Of a stretch of DNA of 64,000 nucleotides, positions 10,301-22,418 are shown piece by piece. The DNA is taken from the NCBI GenBank assembly GCA_964247055.1, contig OZ176053.1, positions 6,696,001-6,760,000 of the forward strand, in the 5' to 3' direction. The position numbers and the translations under genes were made by a program. The notes below the pieces were generated by a model. That model saw nothing but the letters and a program-made list of their open reading frames with translations, had not been told where the DNA came from and ran no database searches. The stretch comes from Paragordius varius. Taxonomy: Eukaryota; Animalia; Nematomorpha. How positions within the stretch are numbered: position 1 is the stretch's first letter; each line of letters starts with the position of its first letter.

Positions 10301-13300
10301 TCATGTCGAGGGAGCCCACTCCGAACAAACCTTCCATCCCACCTCGGAATCTCAAATAGTCCATGCCCCAACTCCTGCTACCTCATGGCAAGACGTAGCC
10401 CCAGAATCGCTGACGCCTATAGAGGCCACACCCGACGTGGTAAAGGAGATTTCTGACCTACCCGAGCGTAGATATCCGCTAAGAAGACGGCAGCCTCCCG
10501 ATCGTTTAAACTTATAGGTATAATGTACGAACACGACAGCCCCCGTGGTTAACTTAGGGGGAAAGTAATGTAAGGTTATAATATTCTATTTTGTTAACAC
10601 CCTCAATTCATGTTGCATCAGTTATTTTGTATTTGAATATTATATATATACCTTTTCCCAGTCTAAATAAACGTTTTCCCAGTCAATCGAAACATTTTCC
10701 CAATCAATCGAAACGTTTTCCCAGTCAATCGAAACGTTTTCCCAGTCAATCGAAACATTTTCCCAGTCAATCGAAACGTTTTCCCAGTCAATAGAAACAT
10801 TTTCCCAGTCAATAAAAACATTTTCCCAATCAATAAAAACGTTTTCCCAGTCAATAAAAACGGTTTTATTTTTGATGATAAATATCAAAACAAGACATAA
10901 AAATAACTTTCAACTATTATCAGCGCAATATTAGAATATTATTTTTTTATAAAAACACAATTATTGAATGACCATTTTCCAAGTATATTCCAGTGCACAT
11001 CATTAATGATTTATTCTTTAAAAATCATATTTTTGGAATTTGAGATGTATTTGCATTATTTGCGGCTAACTTACAAATATAGTTACGGATGAAATATTAA
11101 AAATAAAAATAATATACCATTTTTATCTCAAAGGTCATTTAACACTTCATATTGGAATTTTATAATATTTATCATTTCATCGGGTGCCCAACTCGGCGTG
11201 CCGAGTATCTTTGTGCGGCCCGCGAAAAATTTGGAAATCCATATGCAATATGCCCACAAAATCTTAGTAATATTCATACTTCTTTCGCAATTATTCTGAA
11301 TGAGTCTATTAAATTGGCAACAAATTAAAAAAAATGTTATATTTTTGTATTTTACAGTCTTATGTCTAATCGAAAAATTATTAATGAAATACATCAAATG
11401 CGGAACGCTGTGCTTTTTGAGTAATGCGGCCCGCGAAGCCCTTTGGTTAGACACCCCTGTTTTCTAATATCTTTTTATTAATTTTTTTTTAATCAAAAAC
11501 ATTTTTATCGAAAAAATTTTTGTTTAAATATTTTTTCCGACAGTATTTTTATAGAAAAACTTAAAAAGTTTAGAGACTGTTTTGAAGCTTTCGGCAAATA
11601 TTAATGCGAACTATCAATAAATCAAAAAATATTATCTTAAATACATCTCAAATTCCAAAAATTAATTTTTAAAGAATAAGTGATTAATGATTGTGCACTG
11701 GAATATACTTGGAAAATGGTAATTTAATGATTGTGTTTTTATAAAAAAATAATATCCTAATATTACGCTGATAATGGCTGAAAGTTATTTTTATGTCTTG
11801 TTTTGATATTTATCATCAAAAATAAAACCGTTTTTATTGACTGGGAAAACGTTTTTATTGATTGGGAAAACGTTTCGATTGACTGGGAAAATGTTTCGAT
11901 TGACTGGGAAAACGTTTCGATTGATTGGGAAAATGTTTCGATTGACTGGGAAAACGTTTATTTAGACTGGGAAATGGTATATTTCGTGTTAAAGCTTATC
12001 TGTTGTTGAGAATAACCATTGTGTAACGTCTATGCAAATAAGGCATGCACAAATAAAAAGAACTTGTGATATAATAGCCAGTCATCTTTTTTATTTTGGT
12101 TTTCTTTTTATCGCTCTACTCTATTTTAATATACCATATTGCTATACGTGAATAAATCAACTATACACATATGGTTTTGGTTATTTTGCCGGTATAATAT
12201 TCATCAACTACTGATTGTTTGTGGTAGTATGTTAGACTATTATTAAGTATATATATAGTTTTGTTCATACCAAGTTAAAACTAATTAATTATCATTTTAA
12301 AATATTATTATATTTTTTTCCATATGAAGAATCAAACTGATTATAAATGTTTTGGATTAAAATGTGTAAGAAAACCGACAAATTTAACTTCGAGTTGGGG
12401 AAGCTGGAGTGCTTGGAGTCCCTGCAATGGAAACTATCACGTAGGAATCAGGGCCAAACGAAGACGATGTGAATACGATAGCGACTATGCACCACCGTGT
12501 CAGGGAAAACCATTAAAAATCAAGACATGCTTGCTAAAAGTATACATTCTAAAAATAGAGTTTATTTTTGGCCAATTGGTAGGTAATAAAATAGCGTATG
12601 AGTATAAAAACAAATAGTTGAAATTACAATTTTTTACCATATTAAATTTTAGTTAATGGACCAAATTGTTTTCTATCATAAGTATAATTACTATTGGCCA
12701 ACAATATTAAGAAATGATCAACATTATGTCCATACTGTATTTGAGTTAGATACTTAAACAACCGTTCTTTCCACCCTTATTTATAGGCTTTTATTGAAAA
12801 AATTGGCATAACCATAATTCTAGAGTATTATGAGTTCTGGTAGGAACCAGATTCTGTAAGTCAATTTATAATTATTTCATCCGACAAAAATATTAAATAT
12901 ATTTTTCTCGCCATTTAATGAATTAGCACATAAAGATAAAAACGACATTTCATTTTGACTTTTGGTAGAATGGCTAATTCAGATGTGTAATATATGCGTG
13001 CGCATATAATAAAGTTTATACCCGGTACAATTTTTTATGACTGTATGTGTCGCTGTTAACACTGGGCAGGCTAGTGATAAATAATTTATTGTTCTTAAAA
13101 TAATAAAAATATAACAACGAGATATTCTACACTGTAATTAAAATATAATTTAAATTCTCTATCCAAAATTTAAGAATGTTAGTATCTTTTCCAATACATG
13201 AAACTAAAAACAAATGAATAATATTGATAAATTTTTTTAAAACTAAATGCAGTAGCCTATGGCATAAAACACTATTAGTCCATAAAAGAATAAAAAATGT

Positions 13301-16890: not shown

Positions 16891-19800
16891 CTCCCTAAGT
16901 TTAATTAACGATTTATGTTAAACAATGTATACAATAATTTTGATAATTAAAAAAGTTTTGATTTGCTTTTTACCTGTTAAAAAGGAAGAGAATTGGGTCA
17001 AAATCACAAAGATATATTTATGTGAATTCTAATACAGAAAAATATAGAAGATTGTTTTTCTAGAATATCCAAACAAAATGGTTTGAATCTTTCCGAAAAT
17101 ATAACTCCTAACTTTTAAAATCTAAGCCGTTTAAATTAGGGAATTAAATAATCTAATTAACTTCATTTTCTGCAAAAAATTAGAAATTTACAAAGTATCT
17201 ATTTTAGAAGATGGGCTGCAATTATAAACTATCGGATGAATCAAAACCAGATTACTGTGGAGTTTGTAATGGAGACAATAGCACGTGTCAAATTGTAAAG
17301 TTGGAAAATATCACAAAAACACCAAAAAAATGTATTATACTTGAATATATTTTAATTATTTAGTAAAATTAAATTCTTTTGTGTCCTTAAAAACACCGTA
17401 ACTACCATGTTAAATGTTTGCAAATAGGCTATATTTGATTTAAGTTCGTATCCCAAAACCTGAGATGCAATTTCATGCTAAAATAATTTTTAAAGAGAAT
17501 AAAAGTTTTGTCTCATGCGGCGGTGTATATGCCTAAAATAGTGAAAAATATATTTACTGATATATATATATATATATATATATATAATAAAGTAAAGATC
17601 CTACTATACATTCAATAAAATTATTATAATAATACATAAAAATGCTAAAAAAATTAAAATAAATTGAAATTTAATTTTTTTCGTTTTTAGGGGCGAAATA
17701 CGAATTGGTAACAGTGAAAAAAGGAACACAAAATTTTTATGGCTCATTCGATTTGAATAATGACACCCGTGCTGGCACGTTTATCTATCATATAAGTAAG
17801 TGATTACGTTATATCGGTATTTATACATATAAAAAATAATCTTAAATCAGTTTACTGAAAACAACCACCTTATATATTATAAGTAATTTTTCGATCCACG
17901 ATCTAAAATAAACTAGTACAGTAACGAGAGTTTATCGATCCTTTTAATATTATTAATTAAAAACAAGGTTTTTAAATCATTTATTTGTCTGTTGGAACGT
18001 ATTCAATTTGCATTTTTATTAGTTACATTTGTAATAGTGCTAAACTGGTATTTCATTGCTTATATTTTTCAATCGAAATGAAATGTGATACACACCAATA
18101 ATCGAATTACTTATTTTAGCGAAGTAAAATACCCAAATGGCCATTAATAGCTCTCATTATTGTGTGTGTCTATTTTATTTGACATAATGTATATTAACGA
18201 AAGATGGAGGGTTTTATGTTGGCAGCCTATTTCCCTATAAAATATATGAGAATGTCGAATTCGGGAACATTTTTTAGGAAGGAATTATTAAATAGTCTGA
18301 AAGATGAAATAAAAGAATCTGAATATGAAGGCGTATGGCAGAGTAGAGGTATCGGGCACTTACCCCATGCATTTGATCTCAAACAAACTCCTATTTTTGC
18401 CATTATCCTTGTCGATTCTGACAACTCTAAAACCTATATTTTTCAAAATGCTTAGATTCTAAGTTTTTTTATTTTTTAAAAATATAATAATATAGGTTTG
18501 ACGTATTTGGTTTTTCTATATGGCCATATCCCATCAAATTTTTTCAGTTTCTAAACCTGGTTATTTTCTTGCTAATTAAATATTTGATGTTGCGCAAAAT
18601 TTATAATCCGCCATCAAAAATTGATATATTATGATATATAAAATATAGTAATTCTAATCGATAACCGGACCTATTATAGCTCAACCTCCAATATAAAATA
18701 TGAAATAAGTGATAACATCCTCCATATTCACACACTCAATGCCCTGAAAACTTTTAAAATACAAGTATACCCTAATTTACTTAATTTTATTTTTTAACAA
18801 TTATTTACATTCATTAGCTCAAAAATTTGTTAAAAAATAATATTCAAAAATTTGTAATTAAATGCATGTAAAACCTTGAAGGAAAATTTGGTATCATATA
18901 TCATGTAGAGCAGTGGTTCCCAACCTTTTTTTGTTCACGCCCCACCCAATTAAAAATAAAATTCTTGCACCCCCCTCTCAAAAAAAATCCAAGATAAAAT
19001 TATATATATAATTTTAAATAAATCCTAATCAATGAGAATCTTATATCTTTATTTTTTGAAATATATTATCCATATCGGTGACAAATCTTGATATTTCGCA
19101 CCTGAAATCCTTCAATTTGTATCCGGTTTTATTTTTTAAATTAACCAATTTTTCTGCCCCTCCCCCCTTAGACTTTTGTGCACCCCCCTTGGGGGGCGTT
19201 GTTCCCCTACTGAGAACCACTCATGTAGAGTATATAAATTTATAATTATAATAATTATAACTGTATTTGTCATCAACCAGTAAATTGGTATTGTTTATAT
19301 TATAAACAGATATTTTTGAGTGAAAATAATATAAAACATTATGATTTAGATGATTTTAAGATATAAACGTAAGAGCTAAAGTATTACTTAATGATTGAAC
19401 AATAGCGACAAAGATAGTTTTTTATATTATATATGATAGTATTAACCAAAAGTCCTCGTCTAAAAACATGTTATTTTAGAATTTTTACAAAATGGCTAAA
19501 AAAATGTTGATTATAAAAAGCATCGATTTAAAGTTAAAAAGTTTCTGCACCCTATAGCCTAACTGATACAATTCCATTTTGCAAAACATAAGCCGATAAT
19601 GGGAAAATTAAATCATGAATCTTTGAAAAATTTTGAATTCATGAAAGGTGTTCCAGAAAATTCCATGAATCATTTGATATTTTTATAAAAAATTGGAAAA
19701 ATGGGAATTAATTTTAAACAAGCACCGGTTCTCCTATAAACGTTAGTGAATATATGCTACAATTAAAAAATACATTTTTCTGACCTCTGACACCTGATGG

Positions 19801-20614: not shown

Positions 20615-20855
20615 CGGACAAAACGGAAAAAATATAGACAAATATTTTTTCTAAAAGACAAACATACTTTTGAATCTTAATTTAACTTATTGTTTTAAAC
20701 TGCAAAATGTGAAACAGAAATATATATTACTAACACAATCAATTCTATATTTTACAATTGTAATCAAATAGCTTTCATAGAAAATATTAAGGTTTGAAAA
20801 AGTATGGTTGTCTTTTGAAAAAAATATTTGTCTTTATATTTTTACGTTTTGTCCG
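20615..20855. mobile_element. TA-flanked hairpin MITE
   Basis: ~60-bp inverted arms CGGACAAAACG…/…CGTTTTGTCCG with TA on both sides; related copy at ~37595-37809. Confidence 0.8.
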
Positions 20856-21299
20856 TATTATTTCAATTTTTAGTGTATTAAAACAAATATGAACACAATT
20901 AGCTTGAGAAGTGACTATGCTTTTTATGGAGAAACTGCATAATCTGTTATATAACTAATAAAAATTCTTATGTTTAACAATCCTTCTTCGGCTATAGGCT
21001 CAAACATTTAGATTTGATCGGTTTTGAAAATATCCATTTAAACTTTAAAACATATGTTTATCAATTGAAATATAAATTATTGTATAAATATTAAACTATG
21101 GATAAATTAAAACCTTAAATTATCAAGAGTATCTTTACCAAAATCCTATGCTATGCACATGAGAAATATATTATATTAAGGAAATGCATGAATTGCCCCT
21201 TCTAATATAATCAAAAACGTTTTGAAAAAAGCAGTTAAAAAGAATAATTAGAAAATCACAAATTTTTTTAGCGGAAAACGCCATCTTTATAGTTAATAT

Positions 21300-21624
21300 T
21301 TAACATATTATGGAGATTATTTCTTTTTAGCCTATTGCAATTAGATGTTATAGTACTTCCTATCAAGCATAAGGTGGCTTTTTGGTTTAAAATCTTAAAA
21401 TACTCAGTATATATACAAACTTTTAACGACAGTTTTTACCCGTGTTCATTATGTGTGGCTGATGAGTCCACAACAAGGACGAAACGCGTCTCACACTATG
21501 ACACGTGGTAAACACTGTCCCCTTTAAATTTTCGTTTCATAAAGCCACCTTATGCTTGATAGGAAGTAATATAACTTCTAATTGCAAAGGTAGGCTAAAA
21601 GAAAAAATCTCCATTATATGTTAA
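21300..21624 (+). mobile_element. ~325-bp hairpin element carrying a hammerhead ribozyme
   Basis: Outer inverted arms 21300-21381 and 21541-21624, inner arms 21428-21458 and 21491-21519, ribozyme core at the apex. Confidence 0.8.
21453..21496 (+). ncRNA. Type I hammerhead ribozyme (minimal, palindromic stem III)
   Basis: GTGTGG-CTGATGA-GTCC(acaacaa)GGAC-GAAAC-GC-GTC-TCACAC: complete core, 4-bp stem II, ACGCGT stem III, GUC cleavage triplet ending at 21490. Confidence 0.92.
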
Positions 21625-22418
21625 AAAGTATAATGTACACTAAAGTGACCAGATAGGCTGTTTTTCGCAGTACAGTACTGGGTTTTCGAAAAAAAAACCG
21701 CGCCTGTACTGCGCTGACTTTTGTACTGCTTTTTGAAATAATTTTTTTTATAAAAGTGTTTTAATTACCATTTATTTATACAAGTTTTGTTTGTAGAATT
21801 CGATAGAGTGCCCTTTAAAATAAATAAATGGTTTTTTTTGCTGTAAAAAACTATGGCTTTTAATGTTAATATTTTGTTTACTGCTCTAATTATACATGGA
21901 GTTGGGTTTTGGACGGGTCAAATCGCTTATGAATGCAGCCATTCGCGAAGTGGCGGAACTATCAATATCAGACTTCAGATTTAGGCCAATTTTCATTTAG
22001 AGCCTCGGCAAAAGCGACATCAAAAATAAACAAAAAATAAAATAATATTTTGGTAATTTTATCTTTTGAAAATTCATTTTGTTTCATATAAGCTTCAGCT
22101 AAATTAAATTTATTTGAGTTTACTCTAATTATAATTATCAAACGGAAAATTTTTATATTTCCGCAACATATTATTTTTAAAATTCATTACATTTGGTTTC
22201 GATATAACCTTTTTTTTCTAGGAATAAAACAACTTTTTTATGTTTTGGGTGGGAGGTATTTTCCTTAATTTTTTGTTTCCCTAAACTTTAATTTTTAGCC
22301 AGTTTTCTTTTCATTCTTTTGTGCATAAACAAATTTATAGATCTATTTTAATTTTGGCACACACACACACACAATAATTTTTTTATTAATTCTTTTAATT
22401 TTCTTTTCCGTGCCTTTT

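Follow-up and report, generated by a model that had tools for sequence, protein, structure and literature searches.

What kind of genetic element places a complete hammerhead ribozyme at the apex of a long hairpin in the genome of Paragordius varius, near an ADAMTS-like gene? The locus lies in a 64,000-nucleotide stretch of DNA, the whole of which is called the window here. A sequence-only reading had described the hairpin as a MITE-like fold-back of ~325 bp whose outer arms begin and end in TTAA, and had suggested either a short non-autonomous self-cleaving retroelement family with a rod-like RNA or the remnant of a Penelope pseudo-LTR. Following the locus through the 110.6-Mb, 44-contig assembly of this animal, we conclude that window positions 21249-21625 are probably an old, dead-on-arrival insertion from a ~415-nt, ORF-less, non-autonomous hammerhead family that inserted in the style of Penelope-like elements (PLEs).

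The ribozyme was claimed to be a complete type I hammerhead, and every core position and helices I-III can be read directly in the DNA. Its parts are as follows.

21453-21496, + strand: hammerhead proper (direct reading, Rfam HH9 match and pattern count against a reversed control)
21453-21458 with 21491-21496, + strand: helix I, GUGUGG/UCACAC, 6 bp (direct reading)
21459-21465, + strand: core CUGAUGA (direct reading)
21466-21469 with 21477-21480, + strand: helix II, GUCC/GGAC, 4 bp, with the 7-nt loop ACAACAA
21481-21484, + strand: GAAA (direct reading)
21484-21489, + strand: palindromic helix III, ACGCGU (direct reading)
21490, + strand: C17, with the predicted cut between 21490 and 21491
21429-21444, + strand: distal extension of helix I, 5′ strand, pairing with 21502-21518
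21502-21518, + strand: distal extension of helix I, 3′ strand, pairing with 21429-21444

The type I core (C3 U4 G5 A6 N7 G8 A9 / G12 A13 A14 / A15.1-U16.1 / H17) is present in full at 21459-21490 and aligns to the HH9 core, and the topology is that of type I, with three helices round the core and helix I open-ended. The position of C17 agrees with the cut after C21490 that had been predicted. Past an internal loop, helix I gains 16 further pairs (21429-44 with 21502-18), which bears out the earlier description of a ~30-bp inner arm continuing stem I; across 53 family copies, 88.5% of cells in this distal extension are paired. In cis, helix III comprises 2 bp and a 2-nt loop; in trans, its palindrome would pair over 6 bp. 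In canonical metazoan type I hammerheads, helix I has 6 bp, helix II 4 bp and helix III 1-2 bp, closed by a small palindromic loop; such ribozymes are reported to cleave poorly alone and well as double hammerheads (Cervera and de la Pena; PMC4209133, PMC7229834). Judged by its predicted helices (6-bp helix I, 4-bp helix II), the window hammerhead is of this canonical metazoan type and not the ‘minimal’ Penelope type.

The best Rfam model for the ribozyme of the window and the family is RF02275 (Hammerhead_HH9), to which it aligns in full length at 33-34 bits against a gathering score of 52. In a permissive search of the 451-nt stretch 21250-21700, HH9 aligned end to end over 21440-21512, spanning both sides of the helix I internal loop (33.4 bits, E = 9.9e-07), and the Rfam scan of the whole window gave zero matches at gathering level. 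The Infernal comparison proposed earlier is thus favourable in alignment length and E value (about 1e-6), and unfavourable in score. The shortfall is due to the absence of a helix III hairpin, which in HH9 has 3 bp and a 5-nt loop and is missing in the Paragordius ribozyme. HH9 is also a conserved single-copy motif of amniotes, whereas the Paragordius ribozyme is repeat-borne.

The fold-back that surrounds the ribozyme is one insertion, a 5′-truncated ribozyme unit joined head-to-head to an inverted 3′ fragment.

21234-21248, no strand: left target-site duplicate, 15 bp, matching 21620-21634 at 14/15 positions
21249-21297, - strand: ‘tail’ of ~50 nt, the outermost part of the inverted arm, equal to the first ~50 nt of the family unit, with a small conserved GC hairpin
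21298-21384, - strand: inverted 5′-truncated partner with only the last ~88 nt of the unit, forming the left outer arm; matches the right arm at 90% identity over 89 nt
21382-21625, + strand: main copy, carrying the hammerhead: a unit truncated at its 5′ end to the final 244 of ~415 nt, with the tail-less 3′ end common to the family
21538-21625, + strand: right outer arm, made up of the 3′-terminal ~88 nt of the main copy (arm comparison)
21620-21634, no strand: right copy of the target-site duplication, whose first 6 nt (GTTAAA) are also the element’s own 3′ end

The outer arm pair reported earlier is real (21294-21327 with 21597-21630, 88%; 21335-21399 with 21523-21587, 85%), and the predicted RNA fold of -150 kcal/mol is far more stable than shuffles (z = -17). 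The insertion contains only a trivial 58-codon frame, in agreement with the earlier statement that it has no ORF. Its extent had been underestimated at ~325 bp, since it spans about 21249-21625, with the left arm reaching 21248/49. A 15-bp direct repeat, GTTAAAAAG(A/T)ATAAT, flanks the element at 21234-48 and 21620-34; as GTTAAA is common to the element’s 3′ end and the duplication, the right boundary is ambiguous by 6 nt. The TTAA motifs that had been taken as termini lie inside the GTTAAA 3′ end and the duplicated target, and the left arm extends past TTAA to 21249. Over exactly 21382-21625, the main copy is 93-97% identical to >15 other copies (closest relative, 96.7%); it lacks the first ~180 nt of the unit and has no tail on the right, so 43% of the unit is missing. 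The left partner was identified from the match of L001 1459-1595 to the reverse of reference positions 1657-1794. The two window arms are 90% alike and are not mutual nearest relatives, the partner ranking 6th of 23. A contig over the left junction (21071-21276) has zero differences and confirms the insertion in that sample, and no empty-site allele was seen among the contigs aligned there.

This insertion is one of many. A 345-nt query from the window has at least 113 DNA matches in the genome, and almost all good matches cover only query positions 93-336 (window 21382-21625); the left arm (query 1-95) matches elsewhere only as the reverse complement of the 3′ ends of other loci. A genome search for the exact core pattern gives 44 occurrences, compared with 0 for a reversed control, and a covariance model built from 53 copies finds at least 143 ribozyme-bearing matches (150 candidates scored). 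Upstream, the family unit extends about 180 nt beyond the 5′ limit of the window copy. Two classes of 3′ end, ~50 nt apart, are seen, and the extra 50 nt make up the tail. This tail is a repeat of the unit’s initial 50 nt, which sets the period at about 415 nt, the length after which the longest copies return to their own start. Copies have 5′ ends scattered across the unit and fixed 3′ ends. An ORF, a tRNA-like head and any other Rfam motif are all absent from the family unit. The tail (window 21249-21297, minus strand; L002 oriented 1745-1795) holds a small GC hairpin of GGCG, a 5-nt loop and CGCY, followed by an A-run and conserved between subfamilies that elsewhere have about 55% identity; reverse transcription or transcription might begin there. 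We also note a ~2.9-kb non-coding repeat, about 90% identical at no fewer than five loci, that holds a hammerhead fold-back of subfamily B (L061:3911-6780, L062:3167-6019, L063:3975-6871). A full element was suspected in this ~3-kb repeat, in which five subfamily-B copies sit, and rejected, since the surrounding 10 kb lack any ORF of at least 120 aa; the repeat may be a composite transposon or a segmental repeat.

The copies share a consistent set of insertion hallmarks. Flanking repeats of at least 12 bp accompany 11 of 23 insertions compared with 3% of 506 mismatched-flank controls, and repeats of at least 15 bp accompany 5 of 23 compared with 0.2% of controls; target duplications in the family are 9-18 bp long and varied in sequence. 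Among the matches listed, ribozyme neighbours <1 kb apart comprise 24 head-to-head pairs (minus then plus), 1 tail-to-tail pair and 1 tandem pair, and the 24:2 head-to-head bias has a binomial probability of about 1e-12. An inverted 5′-truncated copy abuts the 5′ end in the window copy and 15 other composites, and the tail is on exactly one outer end in 15 of these 16. Partial tandems of up to about 1.3 units are present in L004, L006, L012 and L014, where the plus copy starts in the 3′ part of the preceding unit. The arms of L004 and L006 are 97.5-99% identical and each other’s nearest relatives; derivation of both arms of a composite from one template appears clear at these two loci and not at the window copy or several others. 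Inverted arms range from about 35 to about 420 nt with a different junction in every copy, and some copies have no inverted arm (L005, L007, L013, L015, L018, L019 and L024). As arm length and junction vary from copy to copy, the fold-back is best read as a by-product of Penelope-style insertion and not as an evolved rod-shaped RNA. The suggested short ORF-less hammerhead retroelement family, related to Penelope biology, stands, on copy number and retroelement hallmarks, but its rod-like RNA design does not, and a MITE-like hairpin with an apex ribozyme is likewise not the design of a family in which most copies have no left arm.

Autonomous PLEs reside in the same genome. They encode a 787-aa ORF in clusters of HTH_animal, RVT_1, DUF8422 and GIY-YIG matches, and their protein has at least 59 genomic matches at 31-100% identity, belonging to several families, many of them arranged as abutting head-to-head (minus/plus) pairs. 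In the one PLE family whose ends were read, the 3′ UTR is 143 nt and a 33-nt tail is found at one end only of each head-to-head pair. This tail, the beginning of the next unit in a partial tandem, links the full-length body to an incomplete unit upstream of it (ORF end and 3′ UTR) and so makes a pseudo-LTR (L038:8640-8870 and L038:9365-9550, with equivalents in L039 and L040). The PLE 3′ UTR also contains a candidate U3-A8 minimal hammerhead (L038:6248-6280, minus strand; also in L039 and L040), composed of UUGACAA, an extra A, a 6-bp helix II and then GAAAUAUU, about 47 nt before the 3′ end of the element. This hammerhead variant was described in 2014 (PMC4209133). As the five PLE copies are about 97% identical, conservation of the candidate is uninformative.

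PLEs are known for frequent 5′ truncation, pseudo-LTR partial tandems, an inverted 5′-truncated copy directly adjoining the 5′ end, a one-sided tail of 30-40 bp and hammerheads in their pseudo-LTRs (Craig et al. 2021, PMC8557442). The Paragordius family combines variable 5′ truncation, a common 3′ end and target duplication with inverted abutting copies, partial tandems and a one-sided tail. Given that this distinctive signature is common to the short family and the autonomous PLEs, we infer from the insertion anatomy that PLE enzymes very probably mobilise the short family. In the proposed mechanism, the RT/GIY-YIG protein of resident PLEs would copy the element RNA into nicked target DNA, and reverse transcription would often begin at both ends of the staggered break, as with PLEs. 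The outcome would be two 5′-truncated copies head-to-head, with a ~50-nt one-sided tail and a 9-18-bp target duplication. In the window copy, the left partner would have stopped after about 137 nt and the right after 244 nt, and the truncation of both would account for a single surviving ribozyme near the apex of an accidental fold-back.

Conservation within the unit centres on the ribozyme. Between the window subfamily and three others, the 94-nt block of ribozyme plus helix I is 96.8%, 93.6% and 90.4% identical, compared with 58%, 59% and 52% for the remaining unit in the same three comparisons; the tail with its small GC hairpin is the only other block conserved between subfamilies. This clear excess of similarity indicates that the ribozyme has been kept under constraint in replicating lineages. 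Across 53 copies, 91.6% of helix cells are paired; one copy has the helix II variant GUCU/AGAC, and in 21 copies the basal pair of helix I is A-U in place of G-U. Covariation among these 53 copies, for which the earlier reading had hoped, is not above shuffled controls, a result we attribute to copies that are recent, too closely related and decaying neutrally. The ribozyme may be part of the element’s own life cycle, processing element transcripts. A 2-bp helix III with a palindromic loop implies efficient cutting only when two ribozymes pair as a double hammerhead; cleavage as a dimer, like any activity of this ribozyme, is a prediction from sequence, and the rarity of closely spaced same-strand ribozymes among the matches listed counts against ready double hammerhead formation. 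RNAcofold did not discriminate between monomer and dimer, since in silico dimers form for any long hairpin. An excess of 5′ ends at the cut site was considered as well and dropped, as only 2 of about 30 junctions are near it.

How the family relates to the resident PLEs bears on several alternative explanations. BLAST of the unit against the PLE loci gave nothing below E 0.006 (one PLE family), and the PLE family read has only the 7-nt TTCCATA in common with the ribozyme family, near both 3′ ends. With no sequence similarity and a different PLE ribozyme, the family does not derive from that PLE by simple internal deletion. It could instead be an independent ribozyme RNA, derived by deletion from no resident PLE, that hijacks PLE enzymes, with a hammerhead-processed circular or multimeric RNA as the template, an extension that we regard as possible yet doubtful. 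If true, it would explain why copies longer than one unit exist without genomic tandem masters, why insertion ends never coincide with the cut site and why the parasite has a canonical hammerhead and its presumed helper a U3-A8 minimal one. Template RNAs paired through the palindromic helix III, if so held, could underlie the head-to-head products.

A classic tandem non-LTR retrozyme, in which a ligated circular RNA serves as template and over-length copies arise from going round the circle, is an improbable account of the family, although it is compatible with mobilisation by PLE enzymes. The canonical type I ribozyme is that of animal retrozymes (PMC7229834), copies reach about 1.3 units although genomic tandem masters are rare, and insertion ends lie away from the ribozyme cut site, so that the linear cut monomer is not the template. 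Against this, the fixed 3′ end in all copies points to a defined start site, and direct tandem repeats are nearly absent: the tandem arrays raised as a prospect by the earlier reading are represented by 1 of 26 close neighbour pairs among the matches listed, with a spacing of 401 nt. This pair (G000:C9:1269631-1270130) is the only same-strand ribozyme pair among the matches listed, and is a possible tandem master copy.

Somewhat less probable still is that the copies are terminal repeats (pLTRs) of a heavily 5′-truncated autonomous Penelope element, akin to the pseudo-LTR remnant suggested at the outset. Many of the resident PLE insertions are themselves no more than very short head-to-head 3′ fragments, and PLE terminal repeats are known to carry hammerheads (PMC4209133). 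However, the longest copies close after about 415 nt and never enter coding sequence, no ORF for RT plus GIY-YIG is found in or beside the copies, and, among the matches listed, 0 of 143 ribozyme matches have an RT/GIY-YIG match at a distance of 3 kb or less (about 150 matches to the PLE endonuclease compared), so the expected linkage to PLE ORFs did not materialise. Nor does the unit share terminal sequence with an autonomous partner in the one PLE family compared, whose 143-nt 3′ UTR (one of several PLE families, read at its ends) has a different motif. Genome searches with GIY-YIG/RVT_1 and the PLE protein, BLAST of the unit against PLE loci and Rfam searches of PLE loci all returned no parent PLE.

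Two further explanations are very improbable. A MITE or other TIR DNA transposon with a TTAA target and a ribozyme present by chance would fit the long inverted arms and the TTAA near both ends of the window copy, but many copies are armless, arm length and junction differ in each, the 9-18-bp duplications are of unrelated sequence and not TTAA, and the left arm runs past TTAA. A TTAA-targeting DNA transposon was rejected, both fixed terminal inverted repeats and a fixed short duplication being absent. A SINE mobilised by a LINE-type reverse transcriptase would fit the 5′ truncation and variable duplications in a genome with at least 150 strong non-PLE RVT_1 matches, but the family has no poly(A) or microsatellite tail and no tRNA, 5S or 7SL head, and its head-to-head bias, one-sided tail and partial tandems are PLE traits (PMC8557442), seen in the resident PLEs too. 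Penelope-style insertion of a short hammerhead family thus remains our preferred reading.

Matches to protein domains support an ADAMTS-like gene with short exons upstream of the insertion and on the same strand, as the sequence-only reading had proposed. TSP_1 is matched in an exon-sized frame at 12324-12614 (plus strand, E = 4e-05), and the cysteine-rich domain ADAMTS_CR_3 is matched weakly at 17211-17360 (plus strand) in an exon-sized frame at 17208-17360. It is possible in principle that the window ribozyme cuts ADAMTS read-through RNA; its core is intact, and a lone copy would be expected to act slowly. The window copy bears no mark of exaptation and is one of >140 dispersed insertions. 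In annotation terms, the fold-back near this gene is what is left of a transposon and no designed RNA gene. On either side of the insertion are other very high-copy repeats, at 20800-20887 and 21636-21760, where the summed contig depth is orders of magnitude above that of neighbouring positions (DNA-like runs), and the second repeat contains a 21-nt inverted repeat (21666-86 with 21693-713).

Small retroelements with hammerheads, and their suspected dependence on PLEs, have already been described, so the kind of element is known; the family itself is new and well preserved. It offers a clean case in which a canonical retrozyme-type ribozyme is found in elements with every structural signature of Penelope-style integration, alongside resident autonomous PLEs that look alike. 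On anatomical grounds, this independently supports the proposal, made in 2026, that retrozymes of animals are carried by PLE machinery (10.64898/2026.07.22.740005). Pipelines restricted to tandem arrays will miss families like the one in Paragordius.

Several short non-coding repeats carry type I hammerheads, including the Sm-alpha and Sj-alpha elements of schistosomes and satellites of newts and crickets, in which a bulge in helix I contacts loop II, and several of these ribozymes cleave as double hammerheads. Their sequences are unrelated to the Paragordius family, and to our knowledge the head-to-head, one-sided-tail anatomy is undescribed for them.

Animal non-LTR retrozymes are closer relatives in form. 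They are small AT-rich ORF-less units of 170-450 nt with target duplications of >4 bp and a proposed PLE dependence (PMC7229834; Li, Clavereau and Pollet 2026 preprint, 10.64898/2026.07.22.740005). The Paragordius family, known from DNA alone, is like them in unit size, AT-rich ORF-less make-up, target duplications, canonical type I hammerhead and short palindromic helix III. However, retrozymes are defined and detected as direct tandem arrays, with linear and circular monomer RNAs as a further trait, whereas among the Paragordius copies tandems are rare and head-to-head pairs and solitary truncated copies dominate. An alignment with PLE terminal repeats is known for Xenopus retrozymes, whereas the Paragordius family is unlike the resident PLE terminal repeat examined. 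Chlamys elements such as MRC1 of Chlamydomonas (PMC8557442) are likewise ORF-less, make pseudo-LTRs and depend on PLE enzymes, a dependence that is probable for the Paragordius family from its insertion anatomy. Unlike the Paragordius family, MRC1-type elements have 3′ ends in common with autonomous partners, form head-to-tail multicopy insertions and lack hammerheads. PLEs themselves have an RT/GIY-YIG ORF and a minimal-type ribozyme, whereas the whole Paragordius unit is ORF-less and its ribozyme is of the canonical type, next to a U3-A8 minimal motif in the resident PLE family examined. Paired ribozymes 100-700 bp apart on opposite strands are also known from Schistosoma in the Penelope literature (PMC8557442, PMC4209133). 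In its insertion architecture, the Paragordius family displays all of the structural traits listed for PLEs (PMC8557442), including a one-sided tail in the range of 30-50 nt.
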